Source: Blepharisma stoltei ATCC 30299 | Taxonomy: Eukaryota > Protista > Ciliophora | Length of the DNA stretch: 64,000 bases | NCBI GenBank assembly: GCA_965603825.1 | Contig: CBFDEM010000028.1 | Span: 496,001-560,000, forward strand | Direction: 5' to 3' | Part shown: piece by piece, positions 22,380-24,600 of the stretch | Numbering within the stretch: position 1 is the stretch's first letter | How the letters are laid out: each line of letters starts with the position of its first letter | Notes under the pieces: model-generated | What the model was told of the DNA's origin: nothing | The model's input: only the letters and a program-made list of their open reading frames with translations | The model's database searches: none | Translations under genes and position numbers: made by a program

Positions 22380-23648
22380 TTATCTTCTGTGCTTCTTTTC
22401 TTTATGCTTGTGCCTTTTAGGGCTTTCTCTATTCCGATACTTAGACTCAGGCGATTTTCTTTCTTTCGACCTTTTTCTGCTTCTATGTGGGCTGCTTTTC
22501 CTTTTCTCTTCTGGGCTTCTGCTTCTTTTTCTCTTTGTCTCTTCTTCTTTTACAATTTCTTCAATCTCCATCTTACCTTCTTCTTTAGCAGTCTGATTTT
22601 CTACTTCAAAAACCTGATAATCAGGGACTTCTTTTTGTTCAGCTTGCTCTATTTTTAAGCACAGCTCCAATCCGCTATTGCTATCAAGCTCTTCAACAGG
22701 TTGTGTCAATGAATTATGAGGAATCGGATGATCTAGATGCTGGGTATCCACAAAGCTTACATCAGCCCTTCTAAGCCACTTTACACTGATAAACTCACTT
22801 GAGCCTCATATATCATTTTTCTTATGAATGATAGGTGACATCATAACGCCACAGCCATGAAATTGTCCAGCAGCGCTATTAACAAAAATAACTATAACAT
22901 TTTTGCCTGGCTGGAAGCTTGAATTTAGCTTAAATGAGTTATCTGGAGGAATAGGGTAGGTTGAGGTCTTTAAAGAGGTTTCAAGGGTTTGAGGATTATA
23001 GACTTGCAATAAGAAATATTTAGCTGATTCCAGAAATTCAGTAATCCCTGCAGACTTGTCTCTGACTTCTCTCAGCTTGTCTTCAATACTTAGTAAGAAT
23101 TTTTCTAGCTGCTTATCGCTGATAATTTCTAAATCTTTGCTGCAAGCTGGACATTTTGTAGTAAAACAAGTCTGACAAGCTGTATATCCACAGCACGTAG
23201 TGATATATGGATTTTTCAGGATTTTGTTACATAGCTGGCAGGCTAAAATGCTTGGGAGTTTTCCAGTAATAATTATTTTTGCTAGTTTTGAGGAAACTGT
23301 TTCTTCTTCTCTTGGCTTTATTGTTTGATTATTTTGTGCTGGGCCAGCTTCAGCAGGAATGATAGGTATAGGTGTTGGTATGGCGCTAGACACTCTTTTC
23401 CCAATAATATAAGTCCCAGCTGGTATCAGCTCATTTTCTTCTTTATATTCTTCTTCATTTGTACTATGCAATAATGATAAGCTGTAATTTTGGTTAGGGC
23501 CTTTTTTCTTCTGAGTCCCATCATCTTTAAGCTTTTTTATTTCAGCGATTTTGTCTTTAAGCTCTCTGACTGAGATTTCTGCACCTTCAATAGGAATGAT
23601 GCATCTCTCTCTTTCACTTTTAAACCTGAAGAAAATTGCAGCACTCAT
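22380..23648 (-). CDS. RBBP6: RBBP6/Mpe1-like protein: DWNN - RING - YTH-like - RS-rich tail (~422 aa)
   Basis: DWNN IFFRFKS...EEYKEENELIP; RING CQLC...CCGYTACQTC...CPAC; YTH-like AKYFLL...KLNSSF...NVIVIF...GQFHG...VKWL; joined via TGA 22806. Confidence 0.8.
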
Positions 23649-23697
23649 CTATTTAATAATCATATTTTAATTTAAGGGTTTATGTAAATATATAAAG

Positions 23698-24600
23698 TTA
23701 TTTATTCTGCATTGATTTTTCTAAGAATGCTCGGATTGTCTCTGTGGTGCTCATCATGATAGCGACGTTAGGGGTATGGAATAATATCCTTGCTAAGGAG
23801 CCTTGAAATAAGGCTAGAAATCCTTCATTCTTAAAAATTAACAAAATCCCATGAAACATATTGTTGTATTTAAAAAGCTTTACTTCTGAATTTTGGCTTG
23901 CTCTTACACATTGCATCCTAACTTTTGCCATATCAAGTGGGTTTGTGATAACAGAGGAAATCGATCCTGCTGCTGCAGAACACAGCAAGCTAGGCCAAAA
24001 GCTAATTTCTTTCTGTGCCCCAACAGTTCAATACTTAAACTTCTCATAAAACATAAAATATAGTGCTGAAAAAGGTCCAAAAGAGCACACTGTAGCTCCA
24101 TATGCTCGATAAATCCCTCTTAGTCCTTCTGTGTTTAGGATTATTTTGAAAGCGTCAATGCCTCCTTTATAGTTATAAATATTCAAATTGCTTTGAACTT
24201 GAAGCCTCTCTTTAACTACATCTATAGGAACGAAGATTGCACATGATACAGTTTCAGCAAAAATCCCTGAACAAAAGTGTGCTCAAAAAGTGCTTTTTTG
24301 TGCAGCTTCAGACTTTAATAATTTTTTCTTAGCAAATTCATAAGCTGACATATAAACACAAACCCCAGGAGCAGATCCAGCAGATGCTATAAAAAAGCCT
24401 CGATAAAGACCTCTTACTCCTTCTTCAGCCAAAGTTTTACTTACAGTCGACCTTATTGTTATCTTTTGGTTTGTTAAGGAAGCTTGCTGGACTTGAAGTT
24501 TTGCTTTAAGAGTGTCTATAGGGTGGACAAATAAGCGGGAAAGACTTCCTGCTATTATGCTTGAAAGAGAAGTGATTAGAATAGGATATTGGTCTGACAT
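23698..24600 (-). CDS. Mitochondrial carrier (SLC25 family, 300 aa; 2 TGA=Trp)
   Basis: Three Px[DE]xx[KR] signatures: PIDTLKAKLQ, PIDVVKERLQ, PLDMAKVRMQ. Confidence 0.93.

Follow-up and report, generated by a model that had tools for sequence, protein, structure and literature searches.

A minus-strand gene of the ciliate Blepharisma stoltei ATCC 30299, located in a 64,000-nucleotide stretch of contig CBFDEM010000028.1 (positions 496,001 to 560,000, hereafter the window), encodes a 422-residue protein that joins a DWNN domain, an RBBP6-type RING, a YTH domain and an Arg/Ser-rich (RS) tail in one chain. [quoted passage not shown] We propose, with a probability of roughly 0.6, that RBBP6/Mpe1, which activates the endonuclease CPSF73, is partitioned here and that the 422-residue protein is the half docking on the nuclease, to which a YTH domain and an RS tail have been fused. 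Both YTH-tagged CPSF subunits and the RBBP6/Mpe1 family are known; the new points are the split of RBBP6 in heterotrich ciliates and the remodelling of the ligand pocket of the fused YTH domain. The features of the gene, in window coordinates, are as follows.

22380..23648, minus strand: intronless coding sequence, one open frame of 422 codons followed by a TAA stop
23388..23648, minus strand: DWNN/ubiquitin-like domain, residues 1-87 (Pfam PF08783, 64.3 bits over residues 5-86, cut-off 26)
23244..23318, minus strand: linker motif KPxEEETV...LAK.I.TG.LP.IL, residues 111-135, its fixed columns invariant in 9 relatives
23139..23240, minus strand: RBBP6-type eight-cysteine RING/U-box-like finger, residues 137-170, with 8 invariant cysteines
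22635..23036, minus strand: YTH domain (Pfam PF04146), residues 205-338, 61.6 bits across an in-frame TGA
22956..22958, minus strand: Tyr231, at the position of the first cage Trp (YTHDC1 W377), which is Trp in the Stentor-type orthologues
22806..22808, minus strand: the in-frame TGA, read as Trp281 and aligned with the second aromatic-cage Trp (YTHDC1 W428; 'QDWGS' in YTHDC2)
22383..22535, minus strand: Arg/Ser/Lys-rich tail, residues 372-422, preceded by an acidic linker (residues 339-371)

The N-terminal domain aligns end to end with residues 1-78 of yeast Mpe1 (phmmer E 6.6e-6, profile E 6.7e-10) and carries an eight-residue, lineage-specific insertion in the K47-N54 region. A six-frame scan of the genome (41.46 Mb, 64 contigs) returned this gene as the sole DWNN match. 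In Mpe1 the corresponding ubiquitin-like (UBL) domain is the part required for binding the nuclease Ysh1 (PMC6436931). The eight RING cysteines (137, 140, 152, 153, 158, 161, 166 and 169) are invariant in 9 relatives and have RBBP6-like spacing, and the best RING match of the family profile in the PDB is the RBBP6 RING (3ztg, E 0.0016); single-sequence and Pfam RING scores are weak and fall under the curated cut-offs. Blocks of the tail (RKRSRSP and SPKR.KHK) are kept in relatives. The architecture first read from the letters of the window, a DWNN domain, RING, YTH domain and RS tail in one gene of the RBBP6/Mpe1 family, is thus borne out by the Pfam matches, the RING alignment and the open frame. 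The region between DWNN and RING (residues 87-136) is devoid of Cys and His and gives no zf-CCHC match in Pfam, which places the zinc knuckle outside this chain. Likewise, the PSR (the R.R..TGIP..F loop, Mpe1 residues 207-218) has no alignable counterpart in the 422-residue protein, and Pfam finds no CCCH zinc fingers in it. The segment 'TGKLPSIL' was considered as a remnant of the PSR (compare 'TGIP.SFL') and rejected, since HMMER aligns the end of the linker, LPSILAC, with the lead-in to the Mpe1 RING, LPDDLKC, and not with the PSR, and the real PSR is in P0276.

The YTH assignment rests on profile, pairwise and structural comparisons. Across the TGA the whole domain matches PF04146 from profile position 1 to 131 of 135 (six-frame scan, 61.6 bits, E 1.9e-15); the piece before the TGA scores 39.6 bits over positions 1-69 and the piece after it continues from position 83 to 131. 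The gap-free alignment to the YTH domain of human YTHDC1 given in the sequence-only reading was reproduced by HMMER against PDB chains, and phmmer against the PDB gives YTHDC2 with E 7.9e-11. An AlphaFold2 model of the domain (predicted local distance difference test score 90.6, from an input of 101 YTH sequences) returned as its first Foldseek match the YTH domain of Arabidopsis AtCPSF30 (5zuu; E 1.5e-9, template modelling (TM) score 0.75, probability 1.00), followed by YTHDC1, Mmi1 (E 6e-9) and YTHDC2, with E values around 1e-9 and TM scores of 0.68-0.78. The profile score and the fold matches of the predicted model, AtCPSF30 and YTHDC1 among them, therefore agree with the YTH domain named in the sequence-only reading.

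The missing knuckle was found by scanning the genome with PF13696 (zf-CCHC_2), which gave a 39.2-bit match on contig 33; the protein of the gene itself scores 35.4 bits.

contig 33, about 491769-492359, minus strand: P0276 (L010:1054-1644), 196 residues, annotated as 'unnamed protein product [Blepharisma stoltei]'

P0276 opens with a 'TEEDRIKQIM' motif, followed by a CCHC knuckle, the segment KRLKRPSGIPTTFL and an RBBP6-type RING; DWNN is absent. The protein is 100% identical to the annotated B. stoltei protein and aligns with Mpe1 residues 175-350 in one continuous alignment (E 8.6e-21) that covers R207, R209 and P215 of the PSR, with KRLKRPSGIPTTFL, its PSR motif (GIP..FL), opposite Mpe1 206-219. 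In yeast these three residues touch Pfs2 and the poly(A)-signal RNA (PMC9380774). Separately, P0276 matches the RBBP6 knuckle (2ysa) with E 9e-11 and the RBBP6 RING (3ztg) with E 1e-7. Twelve relatives of 171-200 residues (about 195) share the same build, all without DWNN; among the 11 that were aligned, 10 start at the EEDRIK motif and one (P0286) shortly after it. A hidden DWNN exon upstream of P0276 was rejected, as the upstream region in B. stoltei is an AT-rich spacer and the genome has a single DWNN, and a 55-residue open reading frame (ORF) upstream of P0276 relatives on environmental contigs proved unrelated to DWNN. The RINGs of P0276 and of the 422-residue protein are related to each other (BLASTP E 4e-6), and relatives of both genes occur in the same environmental assembly series. 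To judge from these alignments, this lineage has distributed the parts of RBBP6/Mpe1 over two RING-bearing genes. The suggestion that the knuckle had been lost and possibly replaced by the YTH domain holds only as far as the 422-residue chain is concerned, from which the knuckle is indeed absent; the genome has retained both knuckle and PSR in P0276. As a side observation, in an apicomplexan cluster of the ESM Atlas named 'Zinc knuckle family protein', 57% of the members carry the RBBP6 knuckle but only 16% a DWNN domain, and DWNN-less RBBP6-like proteins may occur beyond heterotrich ciliates.

We suggest the following division of labour for the two proteins. The DWNN domain would dock on CPSF73, as the Mpe1 UBL does on Ysh1, and the knuckle and PSR of P0276 would dock on the WDR33/CPSF30-RNA module and sense the polymerase module in its poly(A)-signal-bound state. 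The two half-proteins could be bridged, most simply by RING-RING pairing, and such bridging would reconnect the nuclease with poly(A)-signal sensing, a connection that in yeast is made within a single Mpe1 chain. An extra nucleic-acid contact near the cleavage site would come from the YTH domain and RS tail. In ciliates this contact may ancestrally have read N6-methyladenosine (m6A), comparable to CPSF30-YTH of plants and apicomplexans and to the YTH2-RBBP6 association of Toxoplasma, while the YTH domain of heterotrichs would most likely recognise a ligand other than m6A, for example, as Mmi1 does, an RNA element that carries no modification.

The last step is suggested by the ligand pocket, which was compared between 9 heterotrich sequences (including 2 from Blepharisma) and 92 other YTH domains, using YTHDC1 numbering anchored on the PDB titles of the mutants S378A, T379V and M438A.

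K361: K in 92 of 92 others; Q in 9 of 9 heterotrich sequences (Q215 here)
S362: S in 82 of 92 others; V in 9 of 9 heterotrich sequences (V216 here)
N363: variable, N in 48 and S in 17 of 92 others; Y in 9 of 9 heterotrich sequences
N367: N in 87 of 92 others; T, S, A or Q in heterotrich sequences (T221 here)
W377: W in 92 of 92 others; Y in the 2 Blepharisma and W in 7 heterotrich sequences
T379: T in 92 of 92 others; I in 9 of 9 heterotrich sequences (I233 here)
W428: W in 84 of 92 others; W in the 2 Blepharisma sequences (TGA in this genome), deleted with its loop in 7
R475: R in 87 of 92 others; Q in 8 of 9 heterotrich sequences (Q316 here)
D476: D in 92 of 92 others; P in 9 of 9 heterotrich sequences (P317 here)

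About eight positions that are nearly invariant elsewhere have changed in the heterotrich pocket, and the new residues are in turn fixed. The changes that had been noticed by eye (first cage Trp to Tyr231, KSNN to QVYN, and RD of GRDG to QP) were all confirmed by the alignment. Since the replacement residues are fixed, and since identity between Blepharisma and the Stentor-type proteins is about as high in the YTH domain (55.5%) as in DWNN (60.0%) and RING (58.0%), the pattern suggests a new ligand, or a re-tooled surface under constraint, rather than decay. Reading of an unmodified sequence instead of m6A, as by Mmi1, is plausible by analogy. The altered pocket is a feature of the heterotrich lineage and not of the fusion as such, because most fusion relatives have a canonical pocket, in which KSSN, EWATT, the loop Trp, KLGG and SRD are retained. 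Within the heterotrichs, the Stentor protein SteCoe_12744 (P0006, 'DWNN domain-containing protein') shares the architecture of the Blepharisma protein (55-57% identity) and the remodelled Q, V, Y, I, Q and P, but the Stentor-type sequences keep the first cage Trp and have deleted the loop that carries W428 and L439 (7 of the 9 orthologues), whereas the two cage Trp positions of Blepharisma show the reverse. Of the three-residue cage (W377, W428 and L439), Y231 and W281 are present in the B. stoltei domain; the third member is F286 in the HMMER alignment and is absent in that of MAFFT.

The possibility that the domain still reads m6A, or N6-methyladenine (6mA) in DNA, through a Tyr/Trp or Tyr/Trp/Phe cage, so that activation of cleavage stays coupled to adenine methylation as it is in CPSF30-YTH systems, is the strongest competitor of a re-tooled pocket, although we consider it unlikely. 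Trp281 lies exactly at the second cage Trp, Tyr231 is aromatic, Tyr217 corresponds to a Tyr found in YTHDF proteins, and the canonical relatives of the fusion clearly retain the pocket. HMMER also sets Phe286 opposite the cage Leu of YTHDC2, but MAFFT places it at V442 and not at L439. YTH domains can bind 6mA DNA, to go by the PDB titles of 9szp, 6wea and 7l4y, and the genome has a DNA 6mA methylase of the AMT1/MTA1 type. Against this, K361, N367, T379, R475 and D476, which are kept in 87-92 of 92 domains elsewhere, are replaced in every heterotrich sequence, the whole W428-L439 loop is gone from 7 of the 9 orthologues, and neither of the MT-A70 loci found in the genome, whose number is a lower bound, is a clear METTL3 or METTL14.

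The remaining YTH, MT-A70 and CPSF73 genes of the genome bear on the same question. Besides the fusion there are two YTH genes, making three in all.

contig 23, about 637402-638175, plus strand: CPSF30-YTH (L003:1216-1989), CCCH fingers and a YTH domain, one in-frame TGA
contig 21, minus strand: YTHDF-like gene (L002:1417-2157), 246 residues, Pfam YTH 111 bits

YTH domains are therefore found on two subunits of the 3'-end machinery here, in CPSF30-YTH and in the 422-residue fusion. The pocket of CPSF30-YTH is partly non-canonical (IACGT for IKS.N, Phe for the loop Trp and KEAQE for SRD.QE). That of the YTHDF-like protein is mostly canonical (KS..EDD, WTSS and the loop Trp), and of the three genes this one is the most plausible as a conventional m6A reader. 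CPSF73 is encoded on contig 28. The genome scan, which sets a lower bound, found two MT-A70 loci, both on the minus strand (L008:1495-2142 and L009:994-2505), and no clear METTL3 or METTL14; one locus is an AMT1/MTA1 orthologue, the DNA 6mA methylase type, with 285 bits to Tetrahymena MTA1, and the other has two TGA codons in frame and encodes a 504-residue DPPW enzyme that carries ZZ fingers at its C-terminus. Absence of METTL3 and METTL14 does not hold for ciliates in general, as Tetrahymena has both, with AMT4 and AMT3 as the orthologues (PMC7145601). A more far-reaching version of our proposal would combine an RBBP6 in two RING-joined halves with a YTH domain re-tooled for a non-m6A signal that helps to guide the choice of cleavage sites in genomes whose 3' untranslated regions (UTRs) are extremely short, perhaps accompanied by a decaying CPSF30-YTH pocket and the loss of METTL3/METTL14; this is speculative and we rate it as rather doubtful.

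Among known systems, the closest in carrier is Mpe1/RBBP6 itself. The 422-residue protein shares with it the N-terminal DWNN domain, the eight-cysteine RING and the status of being the only DWNN gene, but differs in having the knuckle and PSR in a separate gene, in the YTH domain that follows the RING and in its length, which is far below that of metazoan RBBP6. An Arg/Ser-rich region is present in human RBBP6 as well. In Mpe1 the knuckle and PSR contact the polymerase module and the UBL binds Ysh1 (PMC6436931, PMC9380774), and these contacts are the basis of the division that we propose. The closest in YTH domain is Arabidopsis CPSF30-L, with its apicomplexan counterpart CPSF4, the arrangement by which a YTH domain is already known to be attached to the cleavage complex. 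As there, a DC-type YTH domain is carried by a core cleavage and polyadenylation subunit, and AtCPSF30 is the best structural match; unlike there, the carrier is RBBP6, CCCH fingers are lacking and the pocket is remodelled. The idea of a second way of putting a YTH domain on the 3'-end machinery has stood up, with the CPSF30-YTH of this genome being a separate gene. In Toxoplasma, a YTH2 pull-down recovered the RBBP6 homologue TGGT1_268900 together with CFIm25 (PMC8354455). The likeness lies in a YTH protein partnered with RBBP6 in the 3'-end machinery, a pair that the ciliate gene seems to present in fused, 'Rosetta stone' form; the difference is that Toxoplasma has two co-purifying proteins in place of one chain. 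Mmi1 of S. pombe has a YTH fold that lacks the canonical m6A-contact residues and serves as the model for a reader of unmodified sequence. Mmi1 is not fused to a CPSF subunit, and the changes in the two proteins bear no sign of common descent.

The protein might alternatively have no part in 3'-end formation and act as an RNA-tethered E3 ubiquitin ligase or in a related RBBP6-like activity, with the YTH domain and RS tail only localising the RING. This would be in keeping with the intact eight-cysteine RING and with the roles of metazoan RBBP6 outside 3' processing, for which p53- and Rb-binding regions are mentioned (PMC9380774). We regard it as improbable, given that the DWNN domain is not known outside the RBBP6/Mpe1 family, in which its role is to bind the nuclease (PMC6436931), that this is the genome's only DWNN gene and the function is needed for 3'-end cleavage, and that the Toxoplasma RBBP6 homologue was found with YTH2 and CFIm25 (PMC8354455).

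The fusion extends well beyond B. stoltei. A word-indexed protein search returned 8 full-length relatives with both DWNN and YTH at 51-79% identity, including SteCoe_12744 of Stentor coeruleus. An exhaustive profile search of 1.8 billion representatives added at least 14 further clusters (50% identity) with DWNN and YTH and 7 with RING and YTH, and a profile made from these relatives gave about 45 clusters (90% identity) with both Pfam domains. The ESM Atlas contains a cluster of 94 members, auto-named 'DWNN/YT521-B-like domain-containing protein' and labelled Ciliophora where labelled; members of this cluster and the metagenome proteins differ from the heterotrich proteins in their canonical pocket. 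No zinc knuckle was found in the fusion relatives scanned. Named orthologues from Tetrahymena, Paramecium and Oxytricha did not appear in the word-indexed or representative searches, which is no evidence of their absence because metagenome gene calls miss genes that use TAA/TAG for Gln. Full-text literature searches found no description of a DWNN-YTH protein. The DWNN-RING-YTH fusion is thus widespread in ciliate-like sequences and present in databases, and is undescribed in the literature as far as searched. The novelty expected in the sequence-only reading is therefore confined to the lack of a paper on the fusion; the architecture itself is not unique, with Stentor, at least 45 further clusters and the 94-member Atlas cluster sharing it. 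One environmental contig with a canonical DWNN-RING-YTH gene (L005:1-6774, GC 31%) has 8 of 8 called genes ending in TAA or TAG and none in TGA, a pattern that would fit an organism in which TGA is no stop codon.

The macronuclear genome of B. stoltei is 41 Mbp in size and has UGA as a Trp codon, tiny introns and short UTRs (PMC9942806). The frame of the gene, read from 23648 to 22380, contains a single in-frame TGA (codon 281), and a public protein collection holds an identical, read-through protein of 422 residues (P0001) that carries PF08783 and PF04146. Contigs assembled from 4 runs of one study match the gene. Three of the runs cover it from 22389/22395 to 23635/23645 without mismatch, gap or joint and end at the gene borders, the contig of the fourth run crosses the TGA codon, and the neighbouring gene has its own, separate contigs. 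Because the contigs are free of gaps and joints, end at the gene borders and bridge the TGA, the data fit a single intronless mRNA, and the possibilities of an intron or of two transcripts were rejected; exact transcript ends are not readable from assembled contigs. Separate transcripts on either side of 22806, an outcome that would have spoken against one gene, were not seen in these runs, which are guessed to be RNA. The standard-code ORF list cuts the gene into pieces of 280 and 123 residues, as had been anticipated along with the TGA standing for the second cage Trp, and the alignments to YTHDC1 and YTHDC2 agree with that placement. That the TGA at 22806 is nevertheless a true stop that gives two products, a DWNN-RING-half-YTH protein and a tail protein, is extremely improbable in view of the YTH profile running in frame across it, the alignment of its residue with a conserved Trp, the Trp at this position in a 79%-identical relative, the bridging contigs, the in-frame TGA codons within conserved domains of other genes of the genome and the use of UGA as Trp in B. 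stoltei (PMC9942806), which makes it a sense codon here.

Several points weigh against the partitioned-RBBP6 proposal. We infer the association of the 422-residue protein with CPSF73 and P0276 from homology only. RING-RING pairing is a hypothesis that draws on homodimerisation of the human RBBP6 RING. The reading of a two-gene split covers the heterotrich lineage, and the taxonomic labels of the canonical-pocket relatives are thin: Ciliophora applies to 3 Atlas members, the other canonical-pocket relatives being metagenome proteins. The Tyr231/Trp281 pair, in one alignment together with Phe286, is kept and may allow residual m6A binding. Finally, the runs behind the assembled contigs are only guessed to be RNA; contigs ending at the gene borders favour this guess and do not prove it.

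One Mpe1/RBBP6 chain is thought to couple poly(A)-signal recognition to nuclease firing in yeast and human. A natural separation of the two ends of Mpe1 into two genes would offer a ready-made test of this coupling model, and a YTH domain on the nuclease-docking half would allow the wiring of methyl-adenine reading into 3'-end formation to be tested. The fused form would also lend independent comparative support to the YTH2-RBBP6 association of Toxoplasma. The remodelled yet strongly conserved pocket of heterotrichs may stand for a new ligand specificity among YTH domains, an idea that is testable because Stentor is amenable to RNA interference.

Two further observations concern the surroundings of the gene and its variation. 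The upstream gene is mitochondrial-carrier-like (ORF 23698-23988, same strand), and only about 47 bases (window 23649-23697) lie between its stop and the ATG of the DWNN-RING-YTH gene. As the two genes lie so close and their contigs do not overlap, the signals for promoter and terminator must fit into very little space. In one run (X2), a variant contig covering window positions 22596-22731 differs at six sites (22626, 22647, 22664, 22671, 22674 and 22701). These differences fall in codons 316-341 and are all synonymous, and the variant is an allele, a strain difference or a very recent copy under purifying selection.

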